NCBI GenBank assembly: GCA_002269645.1
Contig: NIVC01002860.1
Location: 1-64,000, forward strand
Length of the DNA: 64,000 nt
DNA from: Macrostomum lignano
Taxonomy: Eukaryota
Direction of reading: 5' to 3'
Shown: positions 47,248 through 51,215 of the stretch, in pieces
Layout: the number at the start of each line of letters is the position of its first letter
Numbering within the stretch: the stretch's first letter is position 1
Position numbers and translations under genes: made by a program
Notes under the pieces: generated by a model
The model's input: only the letters and a program-made list of their open reading frames with translations
Databases searched by the model: none
Told to the model about the DNA's origin: nothing

Positions 47248-50200
47248 TCAGCAGTCCCTCAGGGCCCGCTGGTAGGCCTGTCTCGCCAGCTGGAACAGCC
47301 GCTCGACCTCGGCCTCGTTTGGGAAGCCACAGTCGATGCCGCCGCAGCCGCCGACCTTGACCCCTGGCCTGACGGGGTTCGGAAGCTCGGTCAGGCTGCC
47401 CATCATGGGCGCCGTCTCGATGCCGTTCTTGCCCGCCCGACTGCCGGAGTCGGTCGCCAGCAGCAGGACGCGGAACCGCCAGCGCTCGGCCTCGGCGAGC
47501 TGCAGCTGCGCCTCCGAGAGCTGCTGGCCGGGTTGCTCCAGGCACAGCAGCACCAGGTCGAAGTCGGTCGAGCGCTCCCGGAGCTCGGCAATGTCTGCGC
47601 TGTCGAACACTTCAAAATCGGCGGCTGGGTTGACGGGTCCTCTGGCCGACTCCTGTGACAGCTGGCGCTGGAAGCGGCGCCACCAGTCGCTTCTTTGACG
47701 CCGCCGCAGCCCGGCGCCGCGCAGGTTGCAGCCGACGACGGCCACACGGATGGGCCGCGACTGGCGGCAGCTGGCCAGCAGAGCGGCAATTCGGTGCTGC
47801 TTGAAGACGGCTGCGGGAGTCGGCGGGGAAACCTGCCTCAGATCAGGCAGGAAAGTTGCGGGCACCCTTCAGCGACATCGTCCCCGATCAGCGCTGAAGC
47901 AATTCCGTCCATTCCGCCGACTCCTGAACGCATGCAGGCGCTCATCCACACGCTCACACAGAGTGTACAGCGGGTTGTCCGCGGTAGCTTCTTGCAACAA
48001 AGGTGGGTGCCTAAGGGAAACAATAATCGCTAATAAGCAGCTGCCCGAGTGCTCACCAAAGCCGATGAGCAGCATCACTGCCAACAAGCTGCTGAGGCCG
48101 CCAATCAGCCAGGCGTGCTGCTGCTCGATGGTGCCCGCCTTACTCCCGGCCTCCACGTTGGTCCAAGGGCAGCTCGTCCAGTTGACTCCGTCCAGCTTGG
48201 ATTCTTGCAGTTTATTTCTTTCGACTGATTGGAAGGAAAGGCGGGGAAATTTGAGAGCTTTTGGTTAAGCTGATCATGTGACCTACTTGTTGACTAGCTA
48301 GTGGGCAAAACAAAAAGTAAGAGGTCGAAAGTCTTGATCACGTGACCCTATGGGTGTCTGTCTGTCTGTCTGTCCGTCTGTCTGTCTGTCTGTCTGTCTG
48401 TCTGTCTGTCTGTCTGTCTGTCTGTCTGTCTGTCTCTCTGTCTGTCTGTCTGTCTGTCTGTCTGTCTGTCTGTCTGTCTGTCTGTCTGTCTGTCTGTCTG
48501 TCTGTCTGTCTCTCTGTCTGTCTGTCTGTCTGTCTGTCTGTCTGTCTGTCTGTCTGTCTGTCTGTCTGTCTGTTTGTCTGTCTGTCTGTCTGTCTGTCTG
48601 TCTGTCTGTCTGTCTGTCTGTCTGTCTGTTTGTCTGTCTGTCTGTCTGTCTGTCTGTCTGTCTGTCTGTGTGCCAGTCAGGGTGAATAGCAGAGTTCTCG
48701 GATGTCACGTGACCCTGTACCAGCCCAGGGTAAAAGTTGAATTGCCAGTAATGGTACAGGTGGTTACTGTGAGCTACGGAAATTGTTTTGTGTCACGGAG
48801 GACCCGCCCGCTGCCTCTGCCAGCCGCCTGCAGCAGCAAGGGGGTGGAACTTACATATCGATCTGCTGTGCTTTGGCACTTGATAGACGGCCTGGAATCA
48901 TTTGGTAATGGAAGGCGATTATCATATAATCTGTTATGAAAATTTATCAAAAGTATACCGCTGTTGTCTGTTAAAACTCGGGTGTGCTCTGCAAAATTGA
49001 CAGCGCGTGAACCCACCTGAAGCAGGTCGCTGCGCATCTTGTCGGCGAATCCCGTCAGATTGCGGAGCTGCCACCACCTGGAGCTCGGGGCCTCGGAGAA
49101 CTGCGTGTTAAGTTTGAGAGTATTGTATCAAGAGCGTATTTAGGTAGCGCAAGCTCAATTCGATGAAGAATGACAGCATCCGACTTGGAGTCACCTGAGT
49201 TCGGTCAATAACAGTCGGAGCAGCCTGCCCGGCGAACTTGAGCTCCAAGCGAAAGTCTCGCAATCCTCCGATACCCGTATTTTCCACGAGAAGCTGCCAG
49301 CGGGTCGGCCAGCGGCTGCCCCTGGGCTTCTTGGCGACAATGAGAACTGCTGGCTGCCTTCTGCACTCGTTGAGGTGGTCGCTGGGGTTGCAGTGACTGC
49401 ATGAGCCTGCGGAAAAGTGGATAACTGCCTTTGATAGCCAGCCCCCTGCACTCCTCACCTGGATAACTAATTGCCTTTGATGGCCAGCCCCTGCACTCCT
49501 CACCTGTTTAACTAATTGCCTTTGATGGCCAACCCCCTGCACTCCTCACCTGGATAACTAATTGCCTTTGATGGCCAACCCCCTGCACTCCTCACCTGGA
49601 TAACTAATTGCCTTTGATAGCCAGCCCCCTGCACTCCTCACCTGGATAACTAATTGCCTTTGATAGCCAGCCCCCTGCACTCCTCACCTGGATAACTAAT
49701 TGCCTTTGATAGCCAGCCCCCTGCACTCCTCACCTGGATAACTAATTGCCTTTGATGGCCAACCCCCTGCACTCCTCACCTAGATAACTAATTGCCTTTG
49801 ATAGCCAGTTCTCTGCAATCCTGATCTGGGACAACTAATCGCCAACCCCTGAACTCCCAGAGCCCAGCGCTCACCCCAGCCTTCAAATGAAAAGTACAGC
49901 CACATGGACAGGCCGGCACCCTCGCCGACCTCCATGGCGGCGCTTCGCTCCAAGTCGAAATGGGCGAAGAAGTCGAGGTGATCCACCATTGCCGCCGCGC
50001 GCTCCTTCCGGAATTTCGCGGTCAGCAACTGCCTGGACTGCCCGGGCACCTGAGCGCACCTGAAACTTAGCACCTGGGTTTGTCGGAAATTGTATTCTAA
50101 GACGCTGTGCGAAGAAATTTTCCCACCACTGATGTCGGCCAGAAGGTTATTCTCCAGCGGCAGCTGCAGGGTGAGCTCGCTCCAGGCCGGCTCTGCCTCA

Positions 50201-51215
50201 GAGCACTCGGCGCTGAGTAGCGCTTCGAAAGGGTGCTTCTGTAATCATGATGGGCCAGGACTTCAAAACAATGGGTTGTCAGTGCTCAGGGGAATCTCTC
50301 TACCTCTCCCCCTGTCACTACTTCTCATAACACCCTCTAGGTACCTCTCTGTCACTACTTCTCAGGATCCTCCCTTCTCCCTCCTCACTACTCCTCAGGA
50401 CCCTCTCTACCTCTCCCTCTGTCACTACTTCTCAGGACCCTCCCTTCTCCTTCCTCACTACTCCTCAGGACCCTCTCTACCTCTCTCTGTCACTACTTCT
50501 CATGGCCCTCTCTACCTCTCTCTGTCACTACTTCTCATGGCCCTCTCTACCTCTCTCTGTCACTACTTCTCATGGCCCTCTCTACCTCTCTCTGTCACTA
50601 CTTCTCAAGAACATCTCTACCTCTGTCACTACTTCTCATGGCCCTCTCTACCCCTCTGTCACTACTTCTCAAGAACATCTCTACCTCTGTCACTACTTCT
50701 CATGGCCCTCTCTACCCCTCTGTCACTACTTCTCATGGCCCTGTCTACCCCTCTGTCACTACTTCTCAGGACCCTCCCTTCTCCTTCCTCACTACTTCTC
50801 AGGACCCTCTCTACCTCTCTCCATCACTACTTCTCATGGCCCTCTCTACCTCTCTCTGTCACTACTTCTCAAGAACATCTCTACCTCTGTGTCACTACTT
50901 CTCATGGCCCTCTCTACCTCTCTCTGTCACTACTTCTCAAGAACATCTCTACCTCTGTGTCACTACTTCTCATGGCCCTCTCTACCTCTCTCTGTCACTA
51001 CTTCTCAAGAACCTGTCTACCTCTCTCTCTCTCACTATTTCTCATGACCCTCTCTACCTCTCCCCCTGTCACTACTTCTCAGGATTATCCCTTCTTCTTC
51101 CTCACTACTCCTCAGGACCTGAAGGTTATCTAAAGCGGCAACTCACGCAGTGGGCGCGGCCCGCCAGGAGCAGAGTTGCTGCAATCACCACAGCAGGCGC
51201 CCACACTGAAGACAT
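47248..51215 (-). CDS. Uncharacterised type-I membrane protein, about 523 aa (signal peptide, about 250-aa ectodomain, one TM helix, cytoplasmic alpha/beta domain)
   Basis: Minus-strand exons 51215-51147, 50238-49875, 49406-49195, 49100-49017, 48891-48855, 48224-48057, 48010-47958, 47832-47248 join GT-AG in frame without stops. [23 protein letters not shown] is signal-peptide-like; [21 protein letters not shown] followed by THLCCKK. The last junction is the least certain. Confidence 0.72.
48355..48670. repeat. (TGTC)n microsatellite flanked by TCACGTGACC motifs
   Basis: Direct inspection. Confidence 0.93.
49430..49805. repeat. 46-bp minisatellite (intron of the membrane-protein gene)
   Basis: Unit GCCAGCCCCCTGCACTCCTCACCTGGATAACTAATTGCCTTTGATA. 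Confidence 0.95.
50300..51115. repeat. About 29-35-bp CT-rich minisatellite
   Basis: Core CTCTGTCACTACTTCTCATGGCCCTCTCTAC. Confidence 0.92.

Follow-up and report, generated by a model that had tools for sequence, protein, structure and literature searches.

The described proteins that come closest to the one considered here are single-pass TIR receptors without leucine-rich repeats (LRRs) and the IL-17 receptors with their SEFIR domains, while Ras-like GTPases, and the pseudo-GTPases derived from that fold, have been proposed as counterparts of its cytoplasmic tail. Examples of pseudo-GTPases are the pG domains of p190RhoGAP and CENP-M; we know of no type-I receptor that carries a Ras-like or pseudo-GTPase domain, and to our knowledge animals have not been found to use receiver domains. 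Little is known about how flatworms perceive their surroundings at the membrane. The Platyhelminthes, Macrostomum lignano included, have no Toll-like receptors (TLRs; PMC8609888), and planarians have no IL-1R-type receptors but retain TIR proteins, MyD88 and SARM (PMC7958881). Here, a gene of M. lignano is described that lies on the minus strand of contig NIVC01002860.1 (assembly GCA_002269645.1), at 51215..47248 of its first 64,000 nucleotides, the stretch that was analysed and that is referred to below as the window. It encodes a type-I single-pass receptor-like membrane protein that is, as far as sequence comparison can tell, an orphan without detectable relatives outside M. lignano, and it is a candidate replacement signalling module. 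An initial annotation of the locus had read the tail as a degenerate Ras-like GTPase or, alternatively, a TIR/SEFIR domain. The reading that we prefer, and to which we give about an even chance, is an orphan receptor or adhesion-type glycoprotein of 498 amino acids (aa) whose tail is an unclassified flavodoxin-like domain acting as a non-enzymatic scaffold.

Gene Structure and Transcript Evidence

The locus holds a real gene. By tblastn against the window, a deposited 498-aa protein named "hypothetical protein" (P0002; PAA49759.1/PAA54789.1, locus tags BOX15_Mlig008705g1 and Mlig011489g2) matches the spliced product with 100% identity, and the annotation behind this entry was derived from genome-guided RNA-seq assembly by StringTie, TACO and TBONE (PMC5730564). 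A further public model, P0003, includes translated 5′-untranslated region, as expected because open reading frames (ORFs) were called on transcripts. The gene is thus already deposited, as one of the many orphan genes in this genome. The P0002 model consists of seven exons, which are given here in transcript order together with the transmembrane (TM) helix and one candidate exon outside the model; hydropathy values are on the Kyte-Doolittle (KD) scale.

51147..51215, minus strand: exon 1, with the start codon and residues 1-23, the signal peptide (hydrophobic N-terminus, mean KD 1.8), followed by a GT donor
49875..50238, minus strand: exon 2, ectodomain residues 24-144 and the first base of codon 145, a 100% tblastn match to P0002
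49195..49406, minus strand: exon 3, residues 145-215 of the ectodomain, among them the Cys cluster C147/C150/C159
49017..49100, minus strand: exon 4, ectodomain residues 216-243, with an NLT sequon at 229
48855..48891, minus strand: exon 5, 37 nt, ectodomain residues 244-255 and the first base of codon 256
48057..48224, minus strand: exon 6, the part of the ectodomain next to the membrane, with an NWT sequon at 270 and C274, and the larger part of the TM helix (mean KD reaching 2.4)
48114-48057, then 47810-47803, minus strand: coding sequence of the TM helix, residues 293-314
47958..48010, minus strand: candidate cassette exon, 53 nt, 18 residues, with plausible splice sites and in frame with the acceptor at 47832
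47248..47810, minus strand: exon 7, end of the TM helix, stop-transfer KQHR, 186-aa cytoplasmic tail and stop codon

Every string quoted in the initial annotation is present on the minus strand where it was placed, and the join of the TM exon to the last exon, which that annotation had singled out as decisive, is present in the transcript-derived models. In P0002 the TM exon is spliced straight to the acceptor at 47811/47810 (...AVMLLIGF|AVFKQHRI...). The eight-exon structure originally drawn holds up in being in frame, with canonical GT-AG sites and a product of 523 aa, but the public model has seven exons and 498 aa. The extra exon (48010..47958), the source of a proposed juxtamembrane CCKK, is intronic in P0002 and occurs in none of the four public protein models, and the last exon starts at 47810 rather than at 47832, which places 47832-47811 (22 nt) in the intron. 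The cassette exon, used together with the alternative acceptor at 47832, 22 nt upstream of the annotated one, might constitute a minor in-frame isoform that adds 25 residues after the TM helix; the last intron (246 nt) is identical among the genomic copies, and its conservation gives no information on this exon.

Three genomic copies carry the intact ORF, namely L001 (NIVC01000272.1), L002 (NIVC01003794.1) and L003 (NIVC01002860.1, the contig of the window, to which it is 100% identical across 1.1 kb of compared sequence). Between the window and L001 the exons differ at 4 of 1497 sites (0.27%) and the introns at 23 of 2346 aligned sites (0.98%; Fisher p = 0.009), and coding substitutions among the copies number 0-4. 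Because three copies are intact and their exons are less diverged than their introns, the gene is more than a product of chance. A 309-aa gene lies upstream in all three copies, with an FKBP-TPR gene downstream in L002 and L003. Large-scale duplication is known in the M. lignano genome (PMC5730564), and the three near-identical copies of the locus fit a recent genome duplication of the DV1 line.

Three of the introns consist for the most part of tandem repeats. Intron 1 (50296-51081) is largely an array of 35/68-bp units (~23 or 11 copies), intron 2 (49422-49843) holds 9.2 copies of a 46-bp unit with a donor-like AGGTGAGGAGT in each copy, and intron 5 (48355-48669) holds (TGTC)n in ~79 copies. 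The lengths of these arrays vary among the three genomic copies.

Protein Architecture and Orphan Status

A hydropathy scan finds only two hydrophobic segments in the protein, the signal peptide at residues 1-19 (...AGRAHC|KHPF) and the TM helix at 293-314, and KQHR stands directly after the latter, in agreement with the positive-inside rule. The ectodomain between them spans 267 aa and contains six Cys and both N-x-S/T sequons (N229, N270); it is predicted to be β-rich, at very low confidence, in a full-length AlphaFold model, and it has no Pfam match, to an Ig domain or to any other known domain. The cytoplasmic tail is basic, with an isoelectric point of 9.1, and rich in R, Q, A and L. The topology proposed initially (signal peptide, Cys-containing ectodomain and a single TM helix) is therefore confirmed by the hydropathy scan and the sequence features, as is the presence of the tail, which is 186 rather than about 200 aa long in the annotated model.

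Relatives of the protein, both paralogues and orthologues, were sought widely, as the initial annotation had proposed, and none was detected beyond its own cluster. A word-indexed search of 5.8 billion clusters with the spliced product and an exhaustive phmmer (HMMER) search of 1.84 billion representatives each returned the M. lignano cluster alone, a scan of metagenome contigs with the tail returned nothing, and tblastn of the protein against the window revealed no paralogue. Pfam gave no match to the whole protein, the tail or the ectodomain, PADLOC and NCBIfam gave none to the tail, and a sequence search of the PDB produced only noise, with nothing significant. A near-match to KPBB_C (E = 0.05-0.14) was set aside as noise. 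When the tail exon alone was used as the query, the homologue search listed nothing at E ≤ 10, not even the M. lignano entry P0001, which the full-length query retrieved at E = 0.

Predicted Fold of the Cytoplasmic Tail

The structure of the tail was modelled by single-sequence AlphaFold, both alone and within the full protein, and both models were compared with the PDB by Foldseek. Two parts of the tail are built alike in the two independent runs.

47455..47757, minus strand: α/β core, residues 330-430, with identical elements in both runs
47254..47316, minus strand: C-terminal helix, residues 477-497, in both runs

Within the core, both runs place strands at 332-337, 375-380, 397-401 and 426-429 and helices at 348-366, 382-390 and 411-418. 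The four strands are hydrophobic (VAVVG, FEVF, LVLLCL and VLLLA) and alternate with amphipathic helices. The α/β character that the initial annotation ascribed to the cytoplasmic domain is therefore predicted by two concordant, low-confidence runs, and the first ~100 residues of the tail are, on these models, most likely a compact doubly wound (flavodoxin-like) α/β domain. Flavodoxin-like folds also dominate the weak lists of the top 50 Foldseek matches, where CheY receivers, type II dehydroquinase, Argonaute MID and lumazine synthase recur; the best of these have E values of 0.035-0.5 and target-normalised template-modelling scores (TM-scores) of up to 0.55, obtained with low-confidence models. 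Neither a small GTPase nor a TIR domain is among these top 50, and the models, at their low confidence, single out neither the Ras nor the TIR fold, the two outcomes that had been anticipated.

Comparison With Ras-Like GTPases

The proposal of a Ras-like tail was founded on the order of its elements, and this order can be reproduced. A glocal Viterbi alignment, which fits the whole profile to a part of the sequence and is scored as z against shuffles, places RPIRVAVVG on β1, FEVFDSAD on β3/G3, FDLVLLCLE on β4, RVLLLATDS on β5/G4 and a 14-residue C-terminal stretch on α5 of a small-GTPase profile. The tail reaches z = 3.6 in this alignment, a score equalled by 7 of 2000 shuffles, and its reversed sequence scores z = -0.7. 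The small-GTPase profile comprised 13 sequences entered by hand, and a CheY receiver profile was likewise entered by hand; both served as controls only. The cross-comparisons made with the same method are as follows.

Tail against the CheY receiver profile: z = 2.9
Six CheY-type receivers against the small-GTPase profile: z = 2.1-4.1
Several GTPases against the CheY receiver profile: z up to 3.6
Left-out Arf, Ran and Rho against the small-GTPase profile: z = 13-28
Tail against leave-out small-GTPase profiles: z = 2.0-4.1
Ectodomain against all five profiles: z = -1.2 to 0.9

Since receivers score like the tail against the GTPase profile, values of z around 3-4 are non-specific and reflect generic doubly wound β/α periodicity. 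The co-linear order thus stands, but it is no stronger than that of unrelated CheY receivers, and the reading of the tail's z = 3.3-3.6 against the GTPase profile as support for a Ras relationship was rejected on these cross-controls. As a general caution, a co-linear match of element order to Ras arises from any compact β/α domain.

Other comparisons with GTPases were negative. A regular-expression search of the tail found no G1 GxxxxGK[S/T], G3 DxxG, G4 [NT]KxD or G5 SA[KL] motif; the Pfam Ras, Roc and Arf models did not match; a local HMMER search against the small-GTPase profile gave no match; and hmmalign left the tail unaligned to that profile. Where a P-loop would stand, the tail has an 11-residue stretch without the G1 pattern. 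The local hhalign score of 14.4, on the G5/α5 stretch formed by the C-terminal helix, was equalled by 21 of 100 shuffles. Ras proteins have a six-stranded mixed sheet with an antiparallel β2-β3 hairpin; in the low-confidence models one strand, not two, is predicted between helix 1 and helix 2, with no β2 hairpin. A fully degenerate Ras-superfamily pseudo-GTPase, one that would have lost its G motifs and β2 while attached to a type-I receptor, could account for the reproduced element order and for the contrast between the tail and its reversed sequence. Ras without β2 has the same topology as a flavodoxin-like sheet, which likewise suits this explanation. Set against it are the missing motifs and profile matches, the shuffles that equal the hhalign score, the absence of GTPases from the best Foldseek matches, the lack of a predicted β2 hairpin, and scores that overlap with those of receivers and fall far below those of true GTPases, and we regard it as highly improbable. 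The proposed Ras-like GTPase tail accordingly finds no support above the controls. A somewhat broader formulation, in which the type-I receptor carries as its tail either a motif-less Ras-superfamily pseudo-GTPase or a flavodoxin-like signalling domain of an undescribed kind, is in our view very improbable too; if it were true, it would represent a receptor architecture not known elsewhere, and one that may have evolved in Macrostomum after TLRs and IL-1R-type receptors disappeared from flatworms.

Proposed Role and Folding of the Tail

In the preferred reading, the transcribed orphan gene would give rise to a 498-aa type-I single-pass glycoprotein with a cleavable signal peptide, whose β-rich ectodomain of ~267 aa would bind an external ligand. 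Rather than being a GTPase switch, the α/β tail would probably serve, without enzymatic activity, as a scaffold on which cytoplasmic partners assemble through protein interactions. This is consistent with a tail that carries generic α/β periodicity (z = 3.6 with the GTPase and 2.9 with the receiver profile) of a kind that the ectodomain does not have.

Several observations weigh against this reading. The mean predicted local distance difference test (pLDDT) score of the tail-alone model is 39 and that of the full-length model 40, both of low confidence; the ~45 residues that precede the last helix (431-476) are modelled as coil; and, in what is otherwise a strict β/α alternation, four strands are predicted and a fifth is not. 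Foldseek found no match to either model at E ≤ 0.001 in the PDB, and the fold is therefore not established. The genomic copies differ by just two synonymous and two non-synonymous changes, so few that the ratio of non-synonymous to synonymous substitution rates (dN/dS) is uninformative and selection at the protein level barely testable. A literature search on the gene identifiers returned no matches, and with them no functional or expression-pattern data. Lastly, UniRef and UniProt name the P0001 and P0004 entries, which are alleles with 99.6% identity, "TIR domain-containing protein", a label that the comparisons made here did not reproduce.

Some of these same observations would suit a tail without any stable globular domain, that is, a young orphan sequence that is largely disordered or carries short linear motifs, with the α/β pattern as an artefact. 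The low mean pLDDT, a tail-alone model that lies mostly below 50, the long coil, the lack of homologues and the R, Q, A, L-rich composition are all as such a tail would have them. By contrast, the boundaries of the elements are identical in two runs, residues 330-430 of the full-length model reach a higher pLDDT of 57-69, the four hydrophobic strands alternate regularly with amphipathic helices, and glocal z values of about 3-3.6 against two α/β profiles fall to about zero for the reversed sequence and the ectodomain. A disordered tail is on balance distinctly unlikely, and the receptor-like glycoprotein with a flavodoxin-like tail remains our preferred reading. M. lignano is amenable to RNA interference (RNAi). 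It is also amenable to transgenesis (PMC5730564), so that the gene is directly testable.

Comparison With TIR and SEFIR Domains

The TIR name carried by two of the database entries was considered in its own right. A UniProt TIR name usually reflects a match to the PROSITE profile PS50104, which we presume to be its origin here, probably near threshold. The exact product of the window, A0A267E1S4, is named "Uncharacterized protein" in UniProt, and this different name within an identical family suggests that the TIR match is a borderline one. P0004 (UniProt A0A1I8IPB2) is a 489-aa version in which the end of the last exon (window ~47300-47340) is frame-shifted, presumably as a result of an older assembly, and it is TIR-named all the same.

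A TIR profile was constructed from 120 real TIR proteins, fetched with a seven-sequence bait and reduced to 14 sequences below 60% identity that represent the TLR, IL-1R, SARM1 and plant groups. Against this profile the tail scored -2.3 bits in a local HMMER search, a value equalled or beaten by 709 of 2000 shuffles, with an hhalign probability of 0.02%, a null hhalign global result and a glocal z of 0.23. In a leave-family-out control, TIR domains with no more than 25% identity to the profile members reached z = 8.6-14.4, whereas the tail reached 0.06-1.0 on the same profiles. Pfam TIR, TIR_2 and related models do not match the tail, and none of the classical motifs is present in it, be it box 1 (F/Y)DAF, box 2 RDxxPG with its BB loop, or box 3 FW. 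By residue count, the second and third strands of the tail are ~16 residues apart, as against ~23-24 in TLR2 and SARM1, which is too short a distance to accommodate a BB loop together with helix B. A SEFIR profile, made from three PDB-verified SEFIR sequences, likewise gave no signal (-2.4 bits in HMMER local, glocal z = -0.29), and the SEFIR and IL17R fnIII models of Pfam match neither the tail nor the ectodomain. The TIR/SEFIR alternative offered by the initial annotation thus receives no sequence support, with TIR positive controls that perform as they should, and the tail is not recognisable as TIR or SEFIR by these comparisons.

A highly divergent TIR domain of the STIR superfamily, in a flatworm-specific receptor that would signal through homotypic TIR-TIR contacts with MyD88- or SARM-type adaptors, would take the place of the TLRs and IL-1R that Platyhelminthes have lost. 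The TIR fold, with five parallel strands, is itself a flavodoxin-like α/β fold, compatible with the AlphaFold elements and the Foldseek matches, an α/β domain just past the TM helix of a single-pass receptor is the classical layout of TIR receptors, and flatworms without TLR or IL-1R do retain TIR proteins, MyD88 and SARM (PMC8609888, PMC7958881). Against it, Pfam, HMMER local, hhalign and glocal comparisons of the tail are all null, and the leave-family-out control recovers TIR domains of no more than 25% identity with ease; the missing boxes, the spacing too short for a BB loop and helix B, and the lack of a TIR name on A0A267E1S4 point the same way. We therefore consider a divergent TIR domain unlikely. 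If a receptor with a TIR-like tail did exist in flatworm membranes, this would be of some interest, and here it is the database label that backs it. Judged on motifs and profiles, the tail domain of the proposed orphan glycoprotein contains no nucleotide-binding motifs and has no detectable membership of the Ras, TIR, SEFIR or CheY families.

Neighbouring Genes and Repeats

Elsewhere in the window, on the plus strand, positions 40575-43071 encode a protein of the FKBP-TPR co-chaperone type, in which TPR repeats come after an FKBP_C domain (E = 2.4e-13); its counterpart in L002 and L003 is the annotated 513-aa neighbour. An intron-less ORF of 374 aa at 59151-60275, also on the plus strand, has several hydrophobic segments and a weak match to the rhodopsin-family model 7tm_1 (E = 1.4e-3; 18.6 bits, less than the Pfam cut-off of 30.5), and may possibly encode an orphan G protein-coupled receptor. 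Mini- and microsatellite DNA makes up much of the window (for example 15420-19476, 21439-23493, 43222-46121, 51666-56156, 57866-58694 and 60272-61989) and yields long spurious ORFs in several frames, such as one of 912 aa at 53418-56156.

Relation to Known Receptor and Signalling Families

When set beside single-pass TIR receptors without LRRs, such as the IL-1R family and the "TIR-only" membrane receptors of cnidarians, the M. lignano protein shares the type-I orientation, an ectodomain free of LRRs and, ~20 residues past the TM helix, the start of a cytoplasmic α/β domain of ~150 aa. It differs from them in having no Ig or other known ectodomain, no similarity to TIR profiles in a comparison that does detect TIR domains across kingdoms, no boxes 1-3 and too little space for a BB loop. 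The IL-17 receptor family likewise combines a single TM pass and an ectodomain of ~270 aa with an α/β cytoplasmic domain, but the SEFIR and fnIII signatures of that family, with the SEFIR z of -0.29, are not those of this protein. With Ras-like GTPases and pseudo-GTPases the tail has in common its co-linear hydrophobic strands, a C-terminal amphipathic helix and a compact loop spacing like that of Ras β3-β6; it lacks their nucleotide-binding motifs and a predicted β2, and its likeness to them does not exceed that of CheY receivers to GTPases. Unlike CheY receivers, the tail has no Pfam Response_reg match, and, on a reading of its sequence, its strand 1 does not end in an acidic pocket. It is nevertheless CheY receivers (z = 2.9 with the receiver profile), type II dehydroquinase and other flavodoxin-like folds that provide its best, though insignificant, Foldseek matches.

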